A program made the translations under genes and the position numbers. This document shows, in pieces, positions 12,167-27,062 of a stretch of 64,000 bases of DNA. Numbering within the stretch: the stretch's first letter is position 1; each line of letters begins with the position of its first letter. The notes under the pieces were generated by a model. That model was not told the DNA's origin. It made no database searches and worked only from the letters and a program-made list of their open reading frames with translations. The stretch is from contig ADNK01001198.1 of assembly GCA_000320545.1 (NCBI GenBank), positions 1 through 64,000 on the forward strand, given 5' to 3'. This DNA is from Bigelowiella natans CCMP2755 (taxonomy: Eukaryota; Protista; Cercozoa).

Positions 12167-12442
12167 TGTGGCGTTTTGTTTCTTTTTCTTGGTCTACCCC
12201 GTTTGCAACGGTTCCGGCTGAGCGGTTGCAGATCTTTGTCTCTACTACTCTCAAGCGTACGGCTATAATCCCGGCCTAGTCCCGGCACTGATACTGTGTT
12301 GAATCTCTGGAAAGACTCTGGATAACTCACAAAAAAATAGTACAAAAAAATCCGGTTAATGACCGTAAAATCCGTATTTTAAAATTAGCAATTCAGAACA
12401 TAGCAATTTTATCCTGCGACATGATATCTGCGCCGATTTTAG

Positions 12443-14029
12443 ATGGAAGCTTCGTTCTCGACCTCGAGAGAAGTCGACGTTCCAACACGGCTAGGGAGCG
12501 AACGACTGTGCTTCATGAGTCCGTCATCACCAAAGGGACGCGGAACGACTGCATCTTGTAGAATCTCCGTGATATTCTTCGTGAACTTACTATGTCTTCT
12601 GCAAATAGAAGCGAAAAATATCCCATCTGGCGCCGTTGCGTCCCCACCTGCAGCAAAATCGTTACCTTTGCGACGGAGGATTTTCAAGGTCCACACTTAC
12701 CAACCATCGAGTTCTCATGACTAAAAACTTTGACGATTTTTAGAGCAAGAAGCTGGGAATTAAAGTAGGATGTGGATCAATTCAACGCAAAAATGTAGCA
12801 GTTAGATCGTCTGCAAGGCCTAGTCAAGGTACACTTTAAAGAATTTGTCATTGTCCACCATTTAAATTTTGGGCATTATGCAGCACCACTACCACTATAC
12901 GCCTCTACCATCGATGTCACAAGAAATGACCTTTACGGTTCCGACTCTACCGAAGGAATGACAAGGGTTATTGATGCACTGGAAAAAGCATGTATTGAGA
13001 TCTCCACAGCTCTAGCCAGAGTAAACATAGACCGCCGAACTGGTGATCAAGGCGATATCAATATCCAAGGAGAAAAGCAGAAAAAAATCGATGTGTATGC
13101 CAATGAACTAATTAAAAGAAAACTTTTTGAGAGTGGTGTAGTAGGAGCCATTGCTTCAGAAGAAGAGGATGACATAGTTCTTCCATCAAATCATTCCGTA
13201 GAAAAAGGCCCAATCTATGCAGTAGCATTTGATCCTCTTGATGGATCATCAAATATTGACTGCTCGGTTCCAACGGGGACCATATTCTCCATATACCAAA
13301 TTCCAGAAGAGCAGAGAGATTCGTTAGATTCAACAAACAATCCTTTCCTTTCCCCAGTGACTTCGATCATAGCCTCAGGATATGTAATGTATTCATCGGC
13401 AACCAGTCTAGTTCTGAGTTTCGGAAAGGGAACGCATATTCTTTCACTGGATCCAGACACTCGAAAGTTTGTGTTAACGGGTGCGAATATGCGGGTTCCG
13501 AATCGGGGACCATACTACTCTTTAAATGAAGGACGGTATTTTGATTGGCCAAACGGACTCCGAAATTACATCTCGGATGTAAAACAGGGGAAAGGAACGT
13601 GGGGGAAGAAATACTCATCACGATACGTTTGTTCCTTGGTAGCAGATGTCCATCGCACAATTCTTTATGGTGGGTGGGCAGGAAATCCAAGACCTCATCT
13701 ACGGTTACTTTTCGAGGCGGCCCCCCTTAGCTTTATCTTAGACCAGGTTTCACGCGACTAATATCGTATAAGTATGCTGCTACTGAACTAATTTGAATAA
13801 TGCACAAACCAGGCAGGAGGCAAAGGTTCTGACGGAAATCGCCCGATTTTAAGTTACACCCCAGATACACTGCACCAGGTACATATGACATTTCCCACAT
13901 CTGACCCCCATTATTAATATTTCTAATATATTTCAGCGACTTCCTGTATTCTTGGGTAGTTCTGAAGACATTGAAGAATTAGAAAGCTACGGAGATGTTC
14001 AACAAGGGAAGGCAAACTATGAAGCCTAG
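12443..14029 (+). CDS. Class I fructose-1,6-bisphosphatase, plastid cpFBPase II-type, with bipartite leader; spliced
   Basis: Motifs ASEEED, FDPLDGSSNID, YSSRYVCSLVADVHRT, GGWAGNPRPHLRLLFEAAP. Spliced C-terminus AGGKGSDG..RLPVFLGSSEDIEELESYGDVQQGKANYEA, TAG 14027-14029. First exon carries a hydrophobic segment ISVIFFVNLLCLLQIEA followed by a basic/Ser-rich stretch. Confidence 0.92.
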
Positions 14030-14783
14030 GCGAGGGATCTTAATGCAGCTCGGCATGTACTTGCGAAGTTTGTTAGCTTTGTTACAAACGATAAAGTTCA
14101 TGATTCGAAATGTGATGCCTTGGATAAGGATGGAATAATGATATTTTATTGATTATTTGTATAATTAGATACGATGCAAGAATATGCACTATTTACCTTC
14201 ATGTAATGCATGCTCCACATATCTTAGCCTAAACGACGCTGTATTACGCTTGGATGGAAACGACGGAGAAGCAAGTGGGCATGCTGTGCTAGCAAACATG
14301 TGTGGTGAACCGATAATAATGCAAAAACGTACATTGCATCTGAACGAGATTACAACTCGCAATGCAGCGTATATTTATATATTCATCTGCCGCATCGCAT
14401 GCATGCACGCGGTACGTACGTATACGTAGGATGCGGCGGCGGCACGCACATACAGCTAGAGTGTGTGATGTGCTTAATTGAATCCTATACGGCTTGCTGA
14501 CACAATGCGTGCAACTAGCTTTTGGATGACATGCGGCAGTCACTAACCGTCGTAGCTTTATCGCGCACCACATATATACACAAGTTTCGGTGCATACGTC
14601 GTTCGCGTGCAATGTGTACATGCACATTGAGTACACTAATGCAAAGACTTTTATTTTTCATGTGCAGCATATATGCATAGCCATCACATATACTATGCAT
14701 GGCATAGTGCGCTGCATGCATAGCTCGTATTACGATTGTAGGCGCCACTAATGTGTAATAAATGGGTAGGAGATAGAATCATG

Positions 14784-15965
14784 CTAGGCAGCTCGTTCAA
14801 AAGAGTTTCTCTTTTTCCATCCACAAACCCGATCGAGTTCTATGATGCAGGAACGCGGTCCCTGAGGTTTTCCAATTTCACCTGAAAAGACGGAAGGGGG
14901 GTATGCACTAGACGCAGTCGCTCCGCCCTGAATAAACCACTCTGAGCTCCCCCAAATATCGCATGGGAATAAATCCCCCAGTTCCTCTGTTAAGGCCTTG
15001 GTCACCGAGAATTCGAGCACAAACTTCAAATCCTTATTCAAGAGCCGACAACTATTCCACGTCTCATAAATTTTTTTACATTCTTTTTTGCGTCGTCTTT
15101 GCCACTCGTCACTTCCACTGGTCTTTACATTTTTGGCGCTTGTAAAGGCAGAGGAGCATTGTTGGAATGAAAACTTGACGTAGTCGAAGTCTATGATGTG
15201 TTCTTTAATGAATTCGTTGTTGAAGAGAGGGTTCTCACCGATATCATCGAGAGCAATTTCATACCCTAAATCACGAAGATTCTGCAGACGGGAAAACAAT
15301 AGTTTTTTTGATTTTTGGTTTTGAGGCCACGAATTCTTCGATTCATCCAGTTCTAAAACGATTCCCGTTCCAGAAAAACCAAGGAGAGTAGAATAAAAAC
15401 GCTCATCAAGAAAGTCTCTTGGCAGCGTATTAACAAAAACTCTGCGAATTTTAGGGAACAACGACATAGAGTTCTGTGCGTTCTGGATTTCTCCTAGTTT
15501 CCACGTGATGTATTCCCTCCGATTTGACATGTGTTTTAGCTGAACGAGGTCCATCCAGGGTGCGTGCGTTCCGCTACCTGCTGTCCGAATAAGAGATTCA
15601 ACTCCGTGAACAACACGATCCTCGCCGTCCAGCGACCAGATAGGCATCATTCTCCACTGATACCATGATTCATCTGGGCTTGTTCTCATTCGTCGCAGGT
15701 GTCTAATCTGTGTTTTGCTCAGAGCTGGTGGTTTGTTTACATTGAATTCACGAGGCTTTTCACGATCAAAGTTGATTTGATCTCGTTGGCCAGGATGCTT
15801 CCACTTCTTTGTAGGAGAAGAAGAATGGATCTTGGAATCAAACCTATTAACTGCATCCAAAAATGCCTCTTCGATGAGAGGGGTGGGGCTAGTTGGCTGG
15901 CTAGGTGCTCCCCCGCAAGCAAAGAAAACGTTTGGGAAAAGTGCCGCTTTAGTTCGGCGGTGCAT
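14784..15965 (-). CDS. Intronless EAL-domain (c-di-GMP phosphodiesterase fold) protein
   Basis: EAL motifs in the expected order: MMPIW, GVESLIR, VFVN, IVLELDE, IALDDIG, DYVKFS, FVLEF, FIQGG. The first in-frame ATG is at 15965; the ORF track starts at TTG 15980. Confidence 0.8.
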   Translation of the reverse strand: MHRRTKAALFPNVFFACGGAPSQPTSPTPLIEEAFLDAVNRFDSKIHSSSPTKKWKHPGQRDQINFDREKPREFNVNKPPALSKTQIRHLRRMRTSPDESWYQWRMMPIWSLDGEDRVVHGVESLIRTAGSGTHAPWMDLVQLKHMSNRREYITWKLGEIQNAQNSMSLFPKIRRVFVNTLPRDFLDERFYSTLLGFSGTGIVLELDESKNSWPQNQKSKKLLFSRLQNLRDLGYEIALDDIGENPLFNNEFIKEHIIDFDYVKFSFQQCSSAFTSAKNVKTSGSDEWQRRRKKECKKIYETWNSCRLLNKDLKFVLEFSVTKALTEELGDLFPCDIWGSSEWFIQGGATASSAYPPSVFSGEIGKPQGPRSCIIELDRVCGWKKRNSFERAA

Positions 15966-16399
15966 TCCCGCGTCTCTCAACCTTGTCGCTCTAATGTTAA
16001 GGAATATTCAAGTTGTGCCTCCTCTTAATGCCTCTTTGCACATGTACGCATTCTTCTTCTCTGAGCAGTCGATGAACGTGGCTCTGGAAATGATGATGGG
16101 GGGGGCGATGGTGTCTGTCGTCTACTGTGTCTGGAATCCCTTCGAATAAATAATGGTTGTAGTCGACACACACCCTCCTAATTTTGTAATAATACAAGTG
16201 GTCCTAATAATGAATACATGGAGGAGGGAGTTGTCTGTCGGCTGTATTGGAGTAGTAGTTACAATGATGCTACTTGATAACGACATTGAGTTATTTTATC
16301 CTACGACAACCACTAGACTACTATTTGCTTTGTCTTTATGTCAGAAACTCTTTTGAATTTATCCAAATCTACAAAGAAGTAAGGTGCGACATGACAACT

Positions 16400-17202
16400 G
16401 TCGCATGCACAGGAAGCAAGGGCGTGAGAGAGGCATGGAGGCACATACGTAGCTACAAGAAATGTAGGCGATTATCATCATTGTGAGAGACAGCCTTTGA
16501 TTTACCATCAAATTAAGACATGTCTTCATCTTGTACTTGTCGCAGGCAAGCGAATGTGGTCATAGACGTCTTTGTCGTCATTGCCGTTCGTGTCGCCGAC
16601 AGGTTTGCATCATGTCTTCATGCAAACATCATTATTTTCTCCGACGGATTTCCATTTTTGTTGGACGAACCCACAAAACAAAAGGCGGGGTTTGTCCATG
16701 CGAATGTCTACGCTCATACTCGTAGTGAGTTTCCGGAGGTCTGTCGCGTGTTGGAAATCCATCATGGCATGGGATGATGGTAGTGTCCGACAGTGTCCGA
16801 ATATGTCCGAAGATTGTTGTCTCCTAGAATTCCGGACATGTCTCACTCAGGATGCCACGCTCTGTCGCTCCAGACCAGTGGGCTGGCAGGCTGGCAGGGC
16901 TTGCTGTGCTGTGCGGTGATCGCCAAAACGAGTCGTCACCGTCTAGCCGTGCTAGCGTGGTGGTGACATGCTCAAGTTTGGTTTGATGACGTCAGAACCA
17001 GCTAGCCAGCTCCAGAGTTAGCCAGAGAAAGTGATTTCTGGCCGGACCGGACCTGCATTGAAAGTGATGTTTTTTTGGTTTGCTGGTTTGCTTGCGCATG
17101 CATGCATGTGTGCACGACTGCTAGCACAATCTGAGCAATGCTGGAATGCTGCCTCCTTGACATTCTCTAGCTAGCTAGTTCTGGCACGCGGTGCCCTGCA
17201 TG
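16400..17202. repeat. Decayed intergenic repeat interrupted by the LTR element (continues ~22927-23350)
   Basis: CTAG/CATG/TGCA-rich. Shares an inverted segment (gggatgatg..tgtccg..tgtccgaaga) and the 14-mer gcaatgctggaatg with 43300-43930. Confidence 0.5.
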
Positions 17203-17206
17203 AAAC

Positions 17207-17532
17207 TGTTGCGCGTAAGGTGTTCACAGGCCGAGGCGCTACGTGCACAAGTAGGCAGGGGGGGGGAAAGGCACGTTTGCTTCCTTTTGAAGAGTTGTGT
17301 TTATTTTTATTAAAGATTATATTTTTATTAAATCGTGCACTGCGTAATCATTCGCGAAGCTTTCGCGAATGCCGCCGCACGTGGGGCAGCACACTTCCGG
17401 TGTGCTGCCATGAGTCCCGCCGGAACCCACGTGCCTATGCTGTATTAATATCTACGTTATCTATATTCTATATCCGCGACAACCCCTTTGTTGTCGCACG
17501 TGACTTGTGCCCGCGTAGTGGTACGCGCTACA
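17207..17532 (-). repeat. 3' LTR (326 bp)
   Basis: tgttgcgcgta...tacgcgctaca; matches 22597-22922 by eye. Confidence 0.97.
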
Positions 17533-17543
17533 CCTCCCCCAAG
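17533..17543 (-). promoter_or_regulatory. Polypurine tract
   Basis: Minus-strand GGGGGAGG directly abuts the 3' LTR. Confidence 0.85.
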
Positions 17544-17583
17544 TCACGTTGCTCCTTCCTTCCTTCCTTATTCCCTTAGACCT

Positions 17584-20500
17584 TCATCGCTTTCGGAACT
17601 TCACCAACCACCAGGTAATAGATTCCTCTCTAACCTTATCTCCTTTGTCGCTTACCCAGAACTCACCTTCGTCCTTAGGTTCGTGTCCATACCAGCCCTC
17701 TGCATCAAGGTCCCCCAGGACCTTATACCAGTGCTCAAAGGGTAAGTCGGGAACAGCTAGGTAGAGTAGCTGATATTTTCCGTCCTTTATTTTCATAGCT
17801 ACCCTCTCCATATTTCGTAATCCAGGGTAGCCTAGATAGACAATCTTCATGCGCCAATCGTCGTTCACCCTGACCTTATTGTTTCCATATTCCACATCGA
17901 ACTTAGGTCGGGGTCCTAAACAAGGCATTGCTCGCTCCCACACAGTAGGGTTTACTTTAACATCCTCTAGGAGCTTCTCACCGATATCATAATTCTTTAG
18001 GTGACTGATGTGGCGCAAGGTGACCCTGTTCCCATCATAGATGTAGTACTGCTTCCTCCCCTTCCTCTCGGTAACCTTTGCAACGCCACCCCAGAAGGGG
18101 TCTTGTTTATTTCTCGATCTCAGATTTACCTTGGCCCTAACATACTGTCCTTCCTTTAGAACTCGGCCATCGTACGGGACCTTCTCGTCTTCGCTCTCGG
18201 TATCGTCGTCGTTGTCGTCGCCTTCTTCCCTCTCCTTATCCTTGATACCTCCCCCAGACGTGAAGGTGTCGTTTACTAACCCTTGTATCTTGTCTGGTGT
18301 GGTGCTATTTATCCTGCTTAGGTTGGCCAAGGTGCGGTGGAGTCGCTCTACCTTGGAGTTGGACTGGGCATAGTATACAGGTGAGGCATCAATATTAGGG
18401 TGTGGTAGCTGTAGAAGAGAGGTCTCATTATCCACATGTAACTTCTTTGGTATCTTGTTTATGCTAACTTCATCAGGGATAGCCTGGAGCTCAGACTCCC
18501 AGGTACGGTAGCAGTTAGTAAGCCTCTGCTTATATAAGCCTTTGTTCTTCTTAGCAACGTTGACCTTGATAATCTTTTTAACCCAGCACTTTCCAGTGGC
18601 CACATCAACGAAGGTAAGGTAGTGATAGCCATCGTACTTATAAACATCAATTTGCACGATATCTAAGAAGTTCCTTGCTTTGATTTTCTTAGATGCACGG
18701 CTCTTGCTGGACTCCTTGGTGGCGACGCCTGCCGCCTTCAAGCTGGAGCACCTGCAGCCACGCAGGTATGTCCTTATCTCTTTTAGCTTGTAGGGCCAGT
18801 AGTAATGGTAGAGTAGAGCAGTGATATGGTTTTCTCCTACGTGTGCAGGTCCATGGGCGGTAAAGAGAAGGGCTCCCCTGGTCCGCCGTGGCACGTAGGT
18901 ACGCCTAACATTATTAGTGTATACATATATCCTATCACTAAGTACCTCATGCTTGTGTTTGTATTTATCCAGGTGTTCTTGAAGGTGCTGGAGCTCCTCT
19001 GGCTCAGGCAGGAAGTCGCCGTCCTCGAAGGTAATCGCGTTAACCATAGGGGTGACCTGGGTAGGGACTTTCTTTTCGAACAGCCTGCTGAAATAGTCAG
19101 CAAGCTGCTTGTCTCCTGGTGCGTAGACCACTGTCCTCTTGTCCCTAAACTCTTCCGTGTCCGCCCTCATAGCTGCATACTCATCGTTAGGCGCTTCGAG
19201 CTTGCGGTCGATGCCTAGGAGGGGCTTGTGGTCAGTCATTAAGGTGAAGCTGGGCACCGACAGCAGGTAGTATCTTAGTTTCCTCTGCGCCTCAGTCATG
19301 GCTTTATACTCTCCTTTTGTAGGGCTGTACTTGGCCTCAGCTGCTGTGCAGGCCCTGCCCCACACCCGTATGATCTGCTGGTCTTGGGTAAGTACAGCAG
19401 CCATACCTAGCTTAGACCAGTCTGTCCATAGGGTAGCTGGTCTAGTAGTGTCTAGCTTAGCATTCAATAGGGTGTTGCTGCATAACTTTATTAGGTTATC
19501 GAAGTGGGCATCAAGGCCAGCCTTGGCCCACACCTTAGCGAAGCTGAGGCCTACAGAGTTCTCCTTCCGGTAAGCAGTAGTAAAAGCAGCTGCAGTCCTA
19601 GCGTAGGTAGGGGAGAACCTACGTAGTATCCAAGCTGCAGTCTGCAAGAATGACTTTAACTCCTTTGCATTCTTAGGTTTAGGGGCTTGCTGTAGTGCTG
19701 CTACTTTCTCGGGGTTTGGGGTGATGCGGCCTTGCTCCAGGTAATATCCACACCACTTGATTCTTGTAGCTAGGAATGTACACTTCTGCAGTCTAATAGT
19801 AAAACCGAAGTGTGCAAACCTAATAAATATATTTTCCAGGAGGAAGATCTGAGCGACGACTGTGTTGGTACATATTATGTCATCATCCACATACACAAAC
19901 ACAAACACCCACAACACAGACGCCATCCCATCATGTGTGTATGCCCTGTAGTTCTGACTACTGAACGCATCCCCTGATATGCTTAGGCCGTAAGGGAATA
20001 CGACGAAGTGCCACTTCCTGTGCCTGCTGGAGAACGCGGTAATGGGGCGGGAGGTTTTGTGGATGGGTGTCTGCATGTATGATTCATTTTTATCTAGGGA
20101 AGAGTAGTATTTGTATCCTATGACGTGTTCAATAACGTCATCTATCCTTGGTGTAGGTGTCTGGATCCTCTTTATTACTCGGTTGTGGCGGATGAAGTTG
20201 TGCGCCAGGCGGAAGAAAGGGTAAGTAGGTTTCTTAGCTAGCACATGTCTCACGTTCCATGGTGAGTTGCTTGGCTCTATCTTCCCTTCCTTTGCCCATT
20301 CATTGATCTGCCACTCTATCTTTTCCCAGTCCGCTTCCGGTCGCCTATGTTCTGGGTCATTGATGATGCACTCTTCGTATCCCTTCTTTAGCTCGATCTT
20401 TACTGGGGTAAGCTTGCTGGAGGGCTTCGTCGTCGGCTTGGTGATGTCAGAGTACTTCTCGTTTAATATTTTATTAATGTACTTTTTGCCTTTGTCGATA

Positions 20501-22557
20501 TCCCAATCATCAGCTGGGGGGGTCTTGTCCAGTAGCTCCGTTATCTGTCGGATGGTCTTGCCGGGGTTCTTCTTCCGTAGCTCGGTAGGTGTAGGTAGCT
20601 TGTTGTCCGCTAGGTCCATAAACTCTAACGCATTAACGCTTGACTCAGAGGTCCACTCGTCAAGCCGTATCATGTTCTGGCTGATGGTCCTGCCTGACTT
20701 CTTTGGCAACTTAGCAAAGTATATCTTGTGATTGTAGAATGATATGATCCCCCCTAATTTTTCTAGGGCATCCTGTCCGAGGAGTAGTTCCATGGATAAA
20801 GTCATGGCTACTCGGGTCTTGATTTGGGTCTCCGCGTCGCTGCCAGGTATCTGTAGCTTTAGCATTAGCTCACCGACGGTCTTCATGGAAGAGCTTCCGT
20901 CTGCTTGAGCATATTTACGTTCTTTCTTAGTCACTTGATCCAATAGTCCTAACCTTCTTACTGTGCTTAGGCTTATGAAGGACTTCGGCATGCTGCCACT
21001 ATCCCAAAGGGCAGGTAGTTTCTTGTAGTCTCCGTAGCTGTCTTTAACTTTAACCTTGGTCATAGCAACTTTGATAGTCCTGTTAGCGTCTTCGTCATTA
21101 ATGTTGCATACTCCTAAGTTCTTTATGTCGTCTAGGGTCATGGGCTTGTCTTGGTCCTGCGTTGCTGGTACTGCTGTCTTCGTCGGCGCCTGCTTAAGGT
21201 GATCTAATATTCCGTTTATCTGCTGCTGTATAGCATTGATACTGTTCTGCTTTTTGTTCTTATATTTATTGTTCTTCCCGTTGTTGCTGCCTTGCCATTT
21301 GCTGTTGTTATATCCTTGTCCTCTGCCTTTCTTTCTCTTTAACTTCTCGTAGTGTTCGTTGAGCTGCCTGATCGTCATCCTGGGTCGTCCTTCTTTCCTG
21401 TCTCTGCAGTCTTTAGCGGTGTGTTTCCCTTTACGTGAGCAGTATCCGCAACGTCGGTTACCTTCCCTGTCCTTGTACCAGTCTCGCTGCGGCTTAATAG
21501 CGTTAATGTTTCCTATGCCAGGTACCTTAGGGCTGGTAAACTTGCGGTCCTGCTCCTGCTCGCGTAGGGATATAGCCTGCACTGCTGCCTCCATCGTGGT
21601 GTAGCCTTTCTCCGTAACGTAAGTGGATTCCTTTATCTTTAACTTGAACTCTTCAAACCTTGCCTGATCATCACCTGTGTTGTAATTAAAATCATGTAGT
21701 TCGTCGATCATATCCTGGAAGCGCGTGGCAAAGTCTCTAACAGGTTCTCTCTCATGCTGCATCATTGCTCTGTATTTTCTAATAGCCTGGGGTAGGGAGT
21801 TAGCATCCTGTTCATTTACAAAAGCCTTCATTATCGCCTCAACGTCTCGTAGCCCACTAACTGTAGTGTGTATTTTCTCTAGCTGCCTGATCCGGGTCCT
21901 GCCTGTCTCGTAAAGGTCCATGGCTTGCTTTATTATAGCTAGCCATTTGAGCTTGTCGTTTTCGGTGGGGTTAGGGGTAAAGTCGCAGAGTATACTCCTA
22001 GCGTTCTTCCACCACCTCCTTGCCTCACCTCTTTTCCCGTTGTATTTCGTTATCATAACCGGTGCTGTTTTAACAGACATGAACTGGGTGTTCCGCTGTA
22101 CCGGCTGCTGCTGCTTGACGGTGCTCTGGGTCGTCCCCCGCGAGGCGCCCAGACCCCCGTCGTTCCTAAACAAAGCTGCCCACTCTGGAGGTAAGTCTGC
22201 TTCGTAATCCATGATGTCCTGCATGATAGCTGCCCAAACATCATGTGTCTGATACTTGTATTCTATCGATACTTTCAGTTTGGCGTAGTTGCTCGCCCTG
22301 GGTCGCAAGGCTCGTAATGCCATTACGACCTTCTTGCTTTCGGCGGCCACGTCCTCGTCGTCCGCCTCGTAGAAGTTCTCCAGTGCCTCTGCTGCTGCAT
22401 CTGCTTTCTTAATCCCGGGTGCTGGTCCCGGCGGTGCCTGTGGAGGTGTTCCTCCTCCTTCCTTAGCGTCCGTATCGCCCTTCCTTTCCTGTTTCTGCTC
22501 GTGCCCTTGCACGGCCTGCGAGCCAAAGTCCTGCTGTTCTTCTAGCTGCTGTGACAT
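17584..22557 (-). CDS. Gag-Pol polyprotein (1657 aa): Gag with CCHC knuckle, aspartic protease, RT, RNase H, integrase, C-terminal Dam-like extension
   Basis: CGYCSRKGKHTAKDC; ALWDSGS; LDKNESYMQ and YVDD; WTDWS, TDHKPL, ADYFSR; HGPAH..CRC; QID..VDNE..VER; SH3-like IN C-terminus (DPFWGG..RHISHLK); a further ~130-aa tail. Uninterrupted frame. Confidence 0.96.
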   Translation of the reverse strand: MSQQLEEQQDFGSQAVQGHEQKQERKGDTDAKEGGGTPPQAPPGPAPGIKKADAAAEALENFYEADDEDVAAESKKVVMALRALRPRASNYAKLKVSIEYKYQTHDVWAAIMQDIMDYEADLPPEWAALFRNDGGLGASRGTTQSTVKQQQPVQRNTQFMSVKTAPVMITKYNGKRGEARRWWKNARSILCDFTPNPTENDKLKWLAIIKQAMDLYETGRTRIRQLEKIHTTVSGLRDVEAIMKAFVNEQDANSLPQAIRKYRAMMQHEREPVRDFATRFQDMIDELHDFNYNTGDDQARFEEFKLKIKESTYVTEKGYTTMEAAVQAISLREQEQDRKFTSPKVPGIGNINAIKPQRDWYKDREGNRRCGYCSRKGKHTAKDCRDRKEGRPRMTIRQLNEHYEKLKRKKGRGQGYNNSKWQGSNNGKNNKYKNKKQNSINAIQQQINGILDHLKQAPTKTAVPATQDQDKPMTLDDIKNLGVCNINDEDANRTIKVAMTKVKVKDSYGDYKKLPALWDSGSMPKSFISLSTVRRLGLLDQVTKKERKYAQADGSSSMKTVGELMLKLQIPGSDAETQIKTRVAMTLSMELLLGQDALEKLGGIISFYNHKIYFAKLPKKSGRTISQNMIRLDEWTSESSVNALEFMDLADNKLPTPTELRKKNPGKTIRQITELLDKTPPADDWDIDKGKKYINKILNEKYSDITKPTTKPSSKLTPVKIELKKGYEECIINDPEHRRPEADWEKIEWQINEWAKEGKIEPSNSPWNVRHVLAKKPTYPFFRLAHNFIRHNRVIKRIQTPTPRIDDVIEHVIGYKYYSSLDKNESYMQTPIHKTSRPITAFSSRHRKWHFVVFPYGLSISGDAFSSQNYRAYTHDGMASVLWVFVFVYVDDDIICTNTVVAQIFLLENIFIRFAHFGFTIRLQKCTFLATRIKWCGYYLEQGRITPNPEKVAALQQAPKPKNAKELKSFLQTAAWILRRFSPTYARTAAAFTTAYRKENSVGLSFAKVWAKAGLDAHFDNLIKLCSNTLLNAKLDTTRPATLWTDWSKLGMAAVLTQDQQIIRVWGRACTAAEAKYSPTKGEYKAMTEAQRKLRYYLLSVPSFTLMTDHKPLLGIDRKLEAPNDEYAAMRADTEEFRDKRTVVYAPGDKQLADYFSRLFEKKVPTQVTPMVNAITFEDGDFLPEPEELQHLQEHLDKYKHKHEVLSDRIYVYTNNVRRTYVPRRTRGALLFTAHGPAHVGENHITALLYHYYWPYKLKEIRTYLRGCRCSSLKAAGVATKESSKSRASKKIKARNFLDIVQIDVYKYDGYHYLTFVDVATGKCWVKKIIKVNVAKKNKGLYKQRLTNCYRTWESELQAIPDEVSINKIPKKLHVDNETSLLQLPHPNIDASPVYYAQSNSKVERLHRTLANLSRINSTTPDKIQGLVNDTFTSGGGIKDKEREEGDDNDDDTESEDEKVPYDGRVLKEGQYVRAKVNLRSRNKQDPFWGGVAKVTERKGRKQYYIYDGNRVTLRHISHLKNYDIGEKLLEDVKVNPTVWERAMPCLGPRPKFDVEYGNNKVRVNDDWRMKIVYLGYPGLRNMERVAMKIKDGKYQLLYLAVPDLPFEHWYKVLGDLDAEGWYGHEPKDEGEFWVSDKGDKVREESITWWLVKFRKR

Positions 22558-22573
22558 TGTTAGTCAAATCGTT

Positions 22574-22591
22574 TCCCGTGTGTGGAAGCCA
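22574..22591 (-). promoter_or_regulatory. Primer binding site
   Basis: Minus-strand TGGCTTCCACACACGGGA, 5 nt inside the 5' LTR. Complementary to a tRNA-like 3' end ...GGAAGCCA; the tRNA isotype was not determined. Confidence 0.75.
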
Positions 22592-22596
22592 AAGGT

Positions 22597-22922
22597 TGTT
22601 GCGCGTAAGGTGTTCACAGGCCGAGGCGCTACGTGCACAAGTAGGCAGGGGGGGGGAAAGGCACGTTTGCTTCCTTTTGAAGAGTTGTGTTTATTTTTAT
22701 TAAAGATTATATTTTTATTAAATCGTGCACTGCGTAATCATTCGCGAAGCTTTCGCGAATGCCGCCGCACGTGGGGCAGCACACTTCCGGTGTGCTGCCA
22801 TGAGTCCCGCCGGAACCCACGTGCCTATGCTGTATTAATATCTACGTTATCTATATTCTATATCCGCGACAACCCCTTTGTTGTCGCACGTGACTTGTGC
22901 CCGCGTAGTGGTACGCGCTACA
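22597..22922 (-). repeat. 5' LTR (326 bp)
   Basis: Direct repeat of 17207-17532. Confidence 0.97.
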
Positions 22923-23381: not shown

Positions 23382-26300
23382 TTAGCCAAAATAGTCCTCC
23401 CAACTTCCTGTAGGTTTTTGGCCACAATCCTAAACATAGTCAATGTCAAAATTGTGCATGACAATTACAAGTTGCTATTGAGCATCAAACCTCTGCCTCG
23501 TCGTCGTCTGAGTAGTCATCGAAATGACTAGCATCTGTATCACTTCCTATCTTATTTATGTACGGAGCCTGCCCGAATGAACAATGCACATAATGAGATA
23601 AGAATACTTTTCAACAAATGCATCTACCTTTATTTTCTTCTGAGCCAACGCTTGCCAGTTGATTCCTTTAAACCAGGGATGCGATTTGATGCGCTGAGAA
23701 CCACCCTCTATGACGCCAAGCCTTTCTGAAGACTTTCTCTGAGATCAAGTACATAATTTTGCTTAAACATTGGATTCCACATGCAATTCAATCCTGTACA
23801 GTTTAGTAAGTAGTGAAAATTGCTCCCCGGAGATGTCAAATAGTTTCTCGCCACACATTAGAATAAATATCCAATGTTTCATCGTTACACAATATTCTCA
23901 TTTCGTGGGAGTATGTAACTTTGAAGCATACTTTATGCAACATATTTCCCGTTCAAAATGTATTTGGTGCCAAAATTTATATTTCATTCGCATATTTGTT
24001 CTCAATAAAGGAGAAATATAGCTGTATCCGGGGGTGGGTTCACCCAATGATATAAGCACTGTGTATTGGATTAACTGTACTTCAAGGAGCAACTGGAAAA
24101 CCACCATAACCACAATCGCAAACTACCTTGAGTAATCCCCCGAGAAGGTCCTTAAGAGAGCTGGAAAAATTCGGTGGGTATGTAATGGGTTGCTTTGAGC
24201 ATATCATTTTATACGTATGTTTTGGATTTTCGGCATAGAATGGCGCATAAGAGGAGATGAGCTCGTATGTGAAGATTCCGAGGCACCACCAATCCACACC
24301 TTTACCGTGGCCCCAACCTTTAATGATTTCAGGGGCTAAGTAATCTGGCGTACCACAAAGCGTGTATGTGTTTCCAGTTATTTCTTTAGCAAAACCAAAA
24401 TCAACGAGCTTCAAGTACCCGTGTTGATCGACAAGCAAGTTCTCTGGTTTTAGATCTCGGTAAATGATATCAAGGCTGTGCATGTATTCAAATATAGAAA
24501 CCATGTTGGCCGTATAGAAACATGTATGAGCTTCCGAGAAAGAGCCACCTTTATTCTGAACCAATCCAAATAATTCGCCACCGAGACATAATTCTAGAAC
24601 GAAATACACGTATCTAGAGTCCTTATACGTTGCGAAGAGCTTGATGATGAAAGGATGGTTCATTTTTTGAAGGACTTGTTTCTCACTTACAATGTGTTTA
24701 GATTGCTTGGTGTCTAGCACGATTCGCTTGCTAACGCACTTGAGGGCGTATGTTTTTTTCTCCGGAGACTTCACCAACCAAACAGAACCGAATGACCCTT
24801 TGCCCAAAATGACCGATCTACGCAACTCATTGAGTTTGTAGTTAAAGTTTGTCGCGACCACTTTGTTCTTTGAGTCGTTCTTACGTCCGAGGCCTTCAAA
24901 CACGACAGTATTCTCGCTATTTGTATCAATATTTTGCTGAAATTCATCAAATGATTCAATATACACGCCGTTGACAGATTTTATGATCCATCCAACTTGA
25001 ACTCCCAACCTTTCTGCCTGGAGGTCTTTCTCGACCTTCGTTACCTATGAAATATTCCAACACCAACGTCACTAAATTGAAGTTGCTTTAGAATGTTTTG
25101 GTTGTGATGATGATGATAATGGTGATAAAAGGAGAGTGGCTGCGATAAATTGACGATAGGATCGAAGTTTTTGAAGCAAATGAGCGAAAGTACTGATCCC
25201 ATTCTTCAAAAATGATTGAACACGTTTTCTAATTCACCATATCACATATCCTTATTTATACTATGATAATAATACCCCTATTACGATACCAAAACAATTT
25301 TTTTATTTCACAAACCTTGGTGCCAAAAACCCTCATGCCAAACGTCCCGCCCCATGGAAAAACGATACTGTGCTTATTGTAGTCCTTTGCACGCTCTGCA
25401 AGAAAATCTTTAACCGGGCCAAGAAGAGTCTCAACTGCTAATTTTGATAAGCGCATGAGCACGGTAGGGGTCTCAGTTGCTTTCACCGTGGCAGCGCGTT
25501 TGGCGCCAGTTGAGAGGGCGATCTCACCTATTATCTCCTTGTTTTTCCACTCAACCTCTTGGCCATCAACAAATGCTGTTACATCTCCCTTCTTCAGAAA
25601 ATACATACAATCACCGGTGTCTCCTTGTGACATCACAACATCGCCTTCCTTGAATTCAACCTCTTCAAGTGCCTCCGCAATTGTATGCCGCTCAAAAGAA
25701 GATAGAGCTCTACATAGATCAGTTTGAGCTAGAAATGTGGAACGCCTTGCTAACTCACCCTCCGATACTTCCTTGAGAAGTCGCCTGAATGTGAATCGGG
25801 AAATACACCACAGAGTCACATCGCTCCTAGCATAAATCGACAACGGTGTAGTAGTGTCATGTAGTAACGCCAGCTCTCCAATCAATGAACCCTTATGCAG
25901 CACTCTTATCACATCATCCTCTGATGATCCTGTGGTTTCCTCGCATACGCCATGTTTCACAACATAGAGCATAAGAGCGGGCGTATCCTTCTTCACTATC
26001 ACTTGCCCCTTCGGAATAAACTTCTTAAAGAAACCTCGAAGAATTGCGTCAAAGTGTCTATCACTCGTAATTTCACCCAGCAATGCTGATTTCCGTGTCC
26101 AATTGTAGATCTCCTTTTTCTCATCATCTGATTTGATGTACAATTTAGGATCCACAGGAGCTCGTGTTTGGTCTTTGGGATCTATCGTGGTCGCTATCAC
26201 ATTCTCGCGTTTTACAAATACGCTTCTTAGGTTCCGCTGCCCATAGATCTTGGTGAAAATTTCCATAAATTTTGTTTTTGTCCAGAAGAAACAGACGAGG

Positions 26301-27062
26301 TCCGTTACAGCACGAACCGTAGCGCCTCTAGGAGCCTTGTTGATCAAAGCTCCTTCTCCGAAGTAGTCCCCAGATCGCAAGGTCCCAACCTTAGTATCAG
26401 TACCTACAATCACATCAGCTTTTCCTTTGAGCACCAGATAGAATCCATCTCCTTCTTCTCCTTGTAAGAATACAGGCTCTCCTTCCGAAGTCTTTTTTGC
26501 AATTCCCTCTTTTGCAAGAAGCTCTATAATGTCAGGTTTAAGTTTTGCTAACAACGGCACCGTCTTGAGTCGCTCCATTGTTTCTTTACGATCAACTTCA
26601 ATTTCTACGTTTGCCCCTCGTAATCGTGCTGCCTGTATTTTATCACCTGCACGAGCCTTAAGGGCTTGAGCCTTTGCTTTTGCTTTTGCCCGGTGCAGAG
26701 CTATGAATCCTTTAGGATCACGCATGTACAACATAATGTCTGTAACCAAGCGAGTTTTGGTCGGAGACTCCAACAAATATTGCTGCGACATGCCCAGAGA
26801 CACACCATAATTAATAATCTCAGATCGTGTCATACTCTCCAATTCAAACCTAGTTTTACCCCCGCCTTTGACAGACTGCTGTTGGTGTTGATTTTCAGCG
26901 TTCTTCTTCCCTCCTTTTGACTTGCTATCAGCATTATTAAAAGATGGTATGTCAAGATGCAACACCGGATTTTCTCCCTCCGCCATACCTAAAACCAATC
27001 ACCATGAAGAACTTTAAATTAATCATTGTTCACGTACGTATCATGAATGTCGCCAGAACCAT

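Follow-up and report, generated by a model that had tools for sequence, protein, structure and literature searches.

EAL domains are regarded as a bacterial feature; in eukaryotes, the established component of c-di-GMP signalling is a cyclase, DgcA of Dictyostelium. Scattered EAL hits in other eukaryote assemblies are usually ascribed to contamination. A preliminary description of the window studied here, a stretch of 64,000 nucleotides from the alga Bigelowiella natans CCMP2755 (contig ADNK01001198.1), reported an EAL-type gene embedded among eukaryotic ones, which raises the questions of whether this gene belongs to the alga, where it came from and what its product may do. A full-text search, with most subscription papers outside its reach, found no paper on EAL proteins in chlorarachniophytes or on di-GMP in Bigelowiella. 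The Lotharella ortholog carries the automatic label 'EAL domain-containing protein' in UniRef, so that a database already records the domain, with no study attached.

A single-exon nuclear gene and its neighbourhood

The gene, its transcript and the regions of its product are laid out as follows:

14784..15965, minus strand: coding sequence of a stand-alone EAL protein of 393 aa (single exon, from the ORF translation; single copy in the genome)
14739..16240, minus strand: unspliced transcript of about 1.5 kb, with a 5' UTR of about 275 nt and a short 3' UTR (transcriptome and metatranscriptome contigs)
15798..15965, minus strand: variable, predicted-disordered N-terminus, residues 1-56 (1 of 56 columns invariant; pLDDT <50 for 1-25 and 43-59)
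15660..15797, minus strand: conserved N-terminal extension and first helix, residues 57-102, with HPG, FDR, PP-x-L, TQ and SWY (18 of 46 columns invariant in six orthologs)
14886..15659, minus strand: EAL-type TIM barrel, residues 103-360 (AlphaFold2 model, VIA-align)
14787..14813, minus strand: basic-x-Ser-aromatic-ERAA motif ending the disordered C-terminal tail (kept in four of six orthologs)

The frame runs for 393 codons without an internal stop, from an ATG at 15965 to a stop at 14784-14786. It is a single-copy nuclear gene, with no paralog anywhere in the assembly (91,405,885 bases in 3,736 contigs). Three culture-transcriptome contigs (L156-L158) cover 14741-16240 free of gaps at 99.9% identity, and one marine metatranscriptome contig covers 14739-16118 with no difference; the marine contigs reach over the gene and not over its flanks. 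The gene is thus transcribed in culture and in the sea, and the description of an intronless frame among intron-rich genes holds: the neighbouring FBPase gene has a GT-AG intron at 13747-13812, read directly, and the mean number of introns per gene is 7.8 in B. natans and 16.5 in Amorphochlora (PMC12730881). A hidden 5' exon, or a longer N-terminus with a signal peptide, was considered and rejected, as the transcripts are ungapped and an in-frame stop 14 codons 5' of the ATG rules out any extension. Within the 5' UTR, an 11-codon upstream ORF (16008-16043, minus strand) lies in the same frame as the gene and ends 14 codons before its ATG, and two further upstream ATGs are present.

The preliminary description had also called for reads spanning the FBPase and EAL genes. 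Both lie on one 5,289-bp contig from a 2025 run, which spans 12400-17017 with 0 differences and reveals no chimera. Runs of this kind are flagged as a possible source of the assembly, but the assembly was made by Sanger and 454 sequencing (PMC12730881).

On its upstream side the gene has a young LTR retrotransposon (17207-22922), about 1 kb from the transcript start, with two identical 326-bp LTRs, a 4-bp target-site duplication (AAAC) and a single uninterrupted ORF of 1,657 aa with protease, RT and RNase H matches. Contig depth over this element is thousands of times that of its flanks in two DNA runs, a summed depth and not a copy number. The observed/expected ratio of TpA is 0.43 at 16501-17000 against 1.0-1.3 in the retrotransposon (17501-22000), and is 0.49 in the EAL coding sequence. 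The next gene upstream, on the same strand as the EAL gene, comprises exons of a PKG-like kinase with cNMP-binding repeats (24082-26998, minus strand); if the retrotransposon were absent, about 1.5 kb would separate the 3' end of this gene from the start of the EAL transcript. Neither the FBPase nor the PKG-like kinase gene accompanies the EAL gene in Amorphochlora or on the metagenome contig described below.

Family membership, inheritance and origin

Sequence evidence for the EAL assignment is weak when taken alone, because the Pfam EAL match of the B. natans protein (E=1.2e-5, 25.3 bits) falls below the 31.3-bit gathering cut-off, itself an annotation threshold and not a structural definition, and because a PDB sequence search gave no significant match (best, Listeria 3kzp at E 0.049); an NCBIfam search likewise gave nothing significant. 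Pfam EAL is nevertheless matched by all six orthologous proteins, and their profile aligns to that of 137 bacterial EALs with a probability of 99.4% (local hhalign, E=1.2e-21), every EAL motif (ExLxR, N, ExxE, DD, K, E, QG) being in register in the global alignment. The AlphaFold2 model, which is of a monomer, has a pLDDT of 70.7 overall, 80-97 over most of the barrel, and a pTM of 0.73. When compared by VIA-align, this predicted model gave EAL structures in all of the top 24 rows (Z 12-17; next fold, Z 8.0), with Z 17.0 over 231 residues at an rmsd of 3.3 for PdeA (3u2e). Foldseek also returned EAL domains (best E 2e-8), as did the top of the ESM Atlas search. By predicted fold and motif order the protein is a member of the EAL domain family (PF00563 homologs), as the preliminary description had supposed.

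That description had further proposed a new low-complexity N-terminus of about 100 residues, which does not survive closer inspection. The first 100 residues have an entropy of 4.04 bits, against 4.0-4.15 elsewhere; only residues 1-56 are variable, and residues 57-102 are more conserved (18 of 46 columns invariant) than the barrel itself (65 of 258) and form the most conserved part of the protein. Structural alignments to EAL domains start at model residues 60-63, and part of the stretch 57-102 in the predicted model matches the helix ahead of the first strand in these domains. The motif at the C-terminal end may be a site for a basophilic kinase. A hydropathy scan found no signal peptide or transmembrane stretch common to the orthologs, which suggests that the protein is probably cytosolic.

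Searches of 5.8 and 1.84 billion proteins retrieved five orthologs with identities of 42-58%; they come from Lotharella globosa, Amorphochlora amoebiformis, two other eukaryote transcriptomes and one metagenome contig. In Amorphochlora the gene sits between those for a mitochondrial carrier and a separin on a 251-kb contig, and it is intronless: the NCBI model of 472 aa drops 17 codons as an intron (L003:10001-11470), and this intron was rejected as the 1,470-bp span translates unbroken to 489 aa, the length of the protein held in EukProt. The metagenome ortholog is transcribed and lies among genes for a SET protein, CCT8, phosphoglucomutase and APC2. The CCT8 of this organism is 72-75% identical to that of chlorarachniophytes and is sister to all five sampled chlorarachniophyte sequences (support 100/99 and 100/98), which places the organism, on this gene, as an early-branching member of Chlorarachnea. 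That class also includes the heterotrophs Minorisa and Rhabdamoeba, and the organism may be one of them. Its contig (L004:1-18711) is gene-dense and nearly intron-free, with phosphoglucomutase, APC2 and a 2,311-aa SET protein each in a single frame; this contrasts with the intron-rich chlorarachniophytes and may bear on the timing of their intron gain.

The gene has been inherited vertically under purifying selection. Synonymous sites are saturated in all ten ortholog pairs (pS 0.72-0.91, against pN 0.26-0.40), a wild allele shows 6 synonymous and 2 replacement differences, and GC3 tracks the host, at 0.44 in B. natans and at 0.73 in the metagenome copy, whose neighbours are at 0.65-0.84. Taken together, the spread of orthologs, the saturation and the host-like GC3 date the transfer, as read from these sequences, to before the radiation of the sampled chlorarachniophytes. 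The best explanation is that the gene was acquired by the ancestor that chlorarachniophytes share with the closest sister lineage sampled, and that it has since been single-copy, intronless and expressed. An intronless gene of a bacterial family, about 1 kb from a young retrotransposon, might instead be taken for bacterial contamination, a chimeric assembly or a recent non-functional insertion, and we consider this vanishingly improbable. The orthologs, two of them amid eukaryotic genes in Amorphochlora and on the metagenome contig, the transcripts from cultures and sea, and the saturated synonymous sites rule it out; the later contig joining FBPase and the EAL gene without difference and GC3 values that follow each host also count against it, and no bacterial protein among the 5.8 and 1.84 billion is closer than E ~1e-5.

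As for the source, beyond the five orthologs the protein searches gave only bacterial EALs, at E 1e-5 or worse, and no homolog in other eukaryotes, green algae and plants included; no homolog was found in viral contigs, phages and plasmids either, and a structure search found no EAL among viral structures. Transfer from a bacterium is the simplest account of this distribution, in keeping with the horizontal acquisition first proposed. Chlorarachniophytes hold many endosymbiont-derived genes, and arrival with the green-algal endosymbiont, or by way of a giant virus, would be an indirect route; we hold it to be highly improbable given the missing green-algal, plant and other eukaryotic homologs, the equally empty viral and phage searches, and the presence of the gene in an organism whose CCT8 branches outside those of the five chlorarachniophytes sampled.

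The donor itself is harder to name. No close bacterial relative emerged from a motif scan of GTDB genomes, metagenomes, viral contigs, plasmids and phages, or among ~1,600 genomes scored with the family profile. The best bacterial scores came from REC-EAL proteins of Polyangia (37 of 301 genomes at E<=1e-8, best 47.5 bits), all matches ending at loop 6, with five other phyla reaching at most 35 bits. The algal stem measures 3.4-3.5 substitutions per site, and 4.0-4.5 separate the family from the nearest bacterial node. The algal clade fell among Myxococcota REC-EALs in a tree of 79 rows and outside them in one of 44, both being quick searches on a sample selected in a way that enriched it for Myxococcota. 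The scores and the first tree favour a donor in that phylum; the second tree did not uphold it. The ESM Atlas contains three clusters of stand-alone 'EAL domain-containing' proteins of 327-332 aa, without a Pfam hit and with a feature score of 0.95 against the core; they hold 55-79 members, with taxa known for 2-5, and possibly represent an undescribed divergent bacterial EAL subfamily. These three clusters, of ~330 aa, may be the true sister group of the algal proteins.

A kept metal centre with a rebuilt pocket

The active-site positions, all on the minus strand and numbered with their counterparts in RocR, are:

15585..15599, minus strand: ExLxR signature, E123 (RocR E175) and R127 (RocR R179); invariant in six orthologs, aligned to bacterial EALs
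15429..15431, minus strand: metal ligand N179 (RocR N233); invariant in six orthologs and in 124/124 bacterial EALs
15342..15353, minus strand: E205 and E208 (RocR E265, E268); invariant in six orthologs
15231..15248, minus strand: D240-D241 (RocR D295-D296), then the lineage-specific loop 6, DD[IV]G[ED]N (ortholog alignment)
15168..15176, minus strand: K264 (RocR K316), kept in 6/6, and S266 in place of RocR D318 (S in 6/6, D in 123/124 bacterial EALs)
15003..15014, minus strand: E318 (RocR E352, general base), kept, with F/Y319 for G and V/L/I321 for RocR E355 (alignment)
14922..14930, minus strand: Q346-G347-G348, with QG kept and the following aromatic lost; invariant in six orthologs, in the register of global hhalign

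An intact catalytic site has been defined by RocR E175, N233, E265, E268, D295, K316 and E352 (PMC2952852). These seven positions correspond to E123, N179, E205, E208, D240, K264 and E318 and are invariant in all six proteins, as are R127, D241 and Q346, so that the metal centre is complete and the order of motifs noted in the preliminary description (E/R, N, both E, DD, K, E, Q) is confirmed. The changes it listed, a degenerate loop 6 and altered QP (M107-P108) and KID (K264-F-S266) positions, are equally real and are fixed across the family. Two of the four recognition residues are retained (R127 and D241); the other two, Q and D, have become M107 and S266 in every one of the six proteins. 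The columns concerned are nearly invariant in bacteria: Q161, now M107, is Q in 120/124 bacterial EALs; G353, now F/Y319, is G in 122/124; and E355, now V/L/I321, is E in 123/124. A glycine stands in place of the aromatic residue after QG, and DD[IV]G[ED]N replaces the canonical loop 6, DFG(T/A)GYSS, in 6/6, with D240, D241, G243 and N245 invariant and the N245 column being G in 122/124 bacterial EALs. Further invariant residues are specific to the lineage (W155, K156, E159, W213-P214, Q269-C270 and W343).

Some catalytic role for the protein is probable on this evidence, since catalysis best explains why ten active-site residues have been kept over such a distance when receptors such as FimX lose them. 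Of the two options first put forward, phosphodiesterase or receptor, which were the right pair, the invariance of the seven catalytic positions favours the enzyme. Our main reading, to which we give a probability of roughly 55%, is that of an ancient, horizontally acquired, cytosolic and metal-dependent cyclic-dinucleotide phosphodiesterase. E123, N179, E205, D240, D241 and E318 would bind two metals (Mg/Mn), as in the bacterial enzymes; K264 and E318 would position the attacking water, R127 and Q346 would hold the phosphates, and one phosphodiester bond of the cyclic dinucleotide would be cut to give a linear dimer. Having apparently lost the bacterial sensor domain and the loop-6 switch, and gained a conserved N-terminal extension and a loop of its own, the enzyme is probably regulated differently.

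Two of the changes weaken the case for c-di-GMP hydrolysis without excluding it: dimer-linked activity is said to require loop 6 (PMC12943098; PMC5301497), and the equivalent of RocR D318 ligates the second Mg in PA3825 (PMC5301497). A changed loop 6 is nonetheless compatible with activity, because the sequence of Listeria 3kzp is DDVS at this point, and each of the three EAL proteins of Listeria hydrolyses c-di-GMP in vitro (PMC4125290). Loss of the E355 equivalent leaves the activity of TBD1265 unaffected (PMC12943098). Guanine stacking, too, can be kept, as the c-di-GMP-binding FimX of X. citri has the same arrangement of E-F and QG followed by a nonaromatic residue (E653-F654 and Q673-G674-D675; PMC7288161).

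The preliminary description had also envisaged a c-di-NMP pathway of the alga's own, for which the genome offers no support: an exon-by-exon search of B. natans matched none of GGDEF, DAC, SMODS, Mab-21, PilZ, STING or HD-GYP (HD_5). This is a weak test because the genome is intron-rich, with a mean exon of 159 bp (PMC12730881), so that such a search could overlook a cyclase spread over several exons; for Mab-21 and STING it was run without a positive control. One prok_STING match (L153, G000:C3064:6822-7022, minus strand; E 0.016) contains an internal stop and was judged to be due to chance. Bacteria-like STINGs of protists that have no cognate cyclase have been proposed to sense exogenous cyclic nucleotides (PMC10732462).

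With no maker found in the genome, and in a lineage that eats bacteria, prey would be the likeliest source of substrate: c-di-GMP or a related cyclic dinucleotide from ingested bacteria might reach the cytosol and be cleared there by the enzyme. We put this forward as a tentative idea that is more doubtful than the chemistry itself; prey nucleotides first appear in the food vacuole and not in the cytosol, which counts against it.

The same residues admit other readings. A metal-dependent phosphodiesterase with a rebuilt base pocket could act on a substrate other than c-di-GMP. That substrate might be a cyclic oligonucleotide with adenine or a 2'-5' linkage, the product of an algal synthase so far unrecognised; a linear dinucleotide and a cyclic mononucleotide are further candidates. 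The changes fixed in 6/6 at near-invariant bacterial columns (Q->M, D->S, G->F/Y, E->V/L/I), the new constraints to which the lineage-specific invariant residues point, and a genome in which no maker or reader of c-di-GMP was found are what such a shift would lead one to expect, and the next gene upstream is a PKG-like cNMP kinase, although that neighbourhood is not kept in other genomes. However, a similar aromatic swap does not keep FimX from binding c-di-GMP, TBD1265 can dispense with E355 and no candidate synthase was found, and we regard a changed substrate as unlikely, at something over one chance in five. A similar but slightly lower standing goes to a receptor or very slow enzyme, in which a cyclic dinucleotide bound at the metal centre would signal through the N-terminal extension or the C-terminal motif, as a sensor of prey or pathogens. 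Known EAL receptors lose metal ligands, whereas here 0/7 catalytic positions have changed in six deep lineages; this tells against an idea otherwise suggested by the lost loop 6 and D318 equivalent, by the swap to EF and QG-nonaromatic shared with the receptor FimX, by a conserved surface outside the active site (57-102) that suggests a partner, and by the fact that overexpressed inactive EALs can bind without cleaving (PMC4125290).

The algal genes thus constitute a native, old eukaryotic EAL lineage, in which the metal centre is intact and the base pocket and the regulatory loop have been rebuilt. At a little under even odds, we may be looking at the first vertically inherited eukaryotic EAL phosphodiesterase, with which Chlorarachnea destroy, or read and then destroy, the cyclic dinucleotides of their prey, or with which they turn off a protist cyclic-oligonucleotide pathway that is as yet unrecognised and has another base specificity. 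Its single-exon gene is a directly testable handle on whether bacterivorous protists degrade or sense prey cyclic dinucleotides, and bears on the role of bacteria-like components in protists that have no cyclase. The family also offers a natural experiment that can tell EAL residues serving chemistry from those serving c-di-GMP specificity; if specificity has changed, it would be a new activity on the EAL fold.

Comparison with known systems

Bacterial cyclic-dinucleotide components have been acquired by other protists, namely DgcA by Dictyostelium and the blSTING and eSMODS proteins (PMC4686194; PMC10732462). These are a synthase, receptors and CD-NTases, respectively, whereas the algal protein has a degrading-type domain, occurs in Rhizaria and has no cyclase found beside it; a review of c-di-GMP in Dictyostelium names only the cyclase DgcA and no EAL protein (PMC4686194).

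Among bacterial proteins, the active EALs (Caulobacter PdeA 3u2e/4hjf, Pseudomonas RocR 3sy8, MorA 4rni and Klebsiella BlrP1) share the barrel (Z 15-17 over ~230 aligned residues) and have the seven catalytic positions, the R, the second D and the Q in the same register. Algal identity to them is only 12-18%, with loop 6, Q161, D318, E355 and the aromatic after QG replaced and 15-40 residues inserted behind the KFS strand; the algal protein has neither a sensor nor a GGDEF domain and is encoded by a eukaryotic nuclear gene. The Listeria EALs (3kzp and 4q6j; PdeB/C/D) are stand-alone like the algal protein, and 3kzp, its best PDB sequence match (E 0.049, not significant alone), has an insertion after ExxE and starts loop 6 with DDVS, residues 151-187 of 3kzp being left out of the comparison; they differ in being without the conserved N-terminal extension of the algal family. 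The REC-EALs of Myxococcota (Polyangia) share N-x4-D-[LF]-[LI]-D and LR-x-LG-Y-x-IALDD-x-G with the algal family, but they have the canonical QP, loop 6, KxD, EGxE and QGY, from which the algal proteins depart, and a receiver domain: Response_reg is present in the Myxococcota proteins P0007, P0017 and P0018 and has no match in the algal ones.

The degenerate receptors FimX, LapD and YdiV are alike in fold (Z 12.8-16.2) and have lost metal ligands, all of which the algal family keeps; LapD and YdiV share this loss with FimX. FimX is without the DDFGTG motif (PMC5301497), and the algal F after E318, with a nonaromatic residue after QG, mirrors FimX of X. citri. Judged by these residues, the algal protein appears to be neither a canonical RocR-type enzyme, because loop 6 and two of the four recognition residues differ, nor a degenerate receptor, because every metal ligand has been kept.
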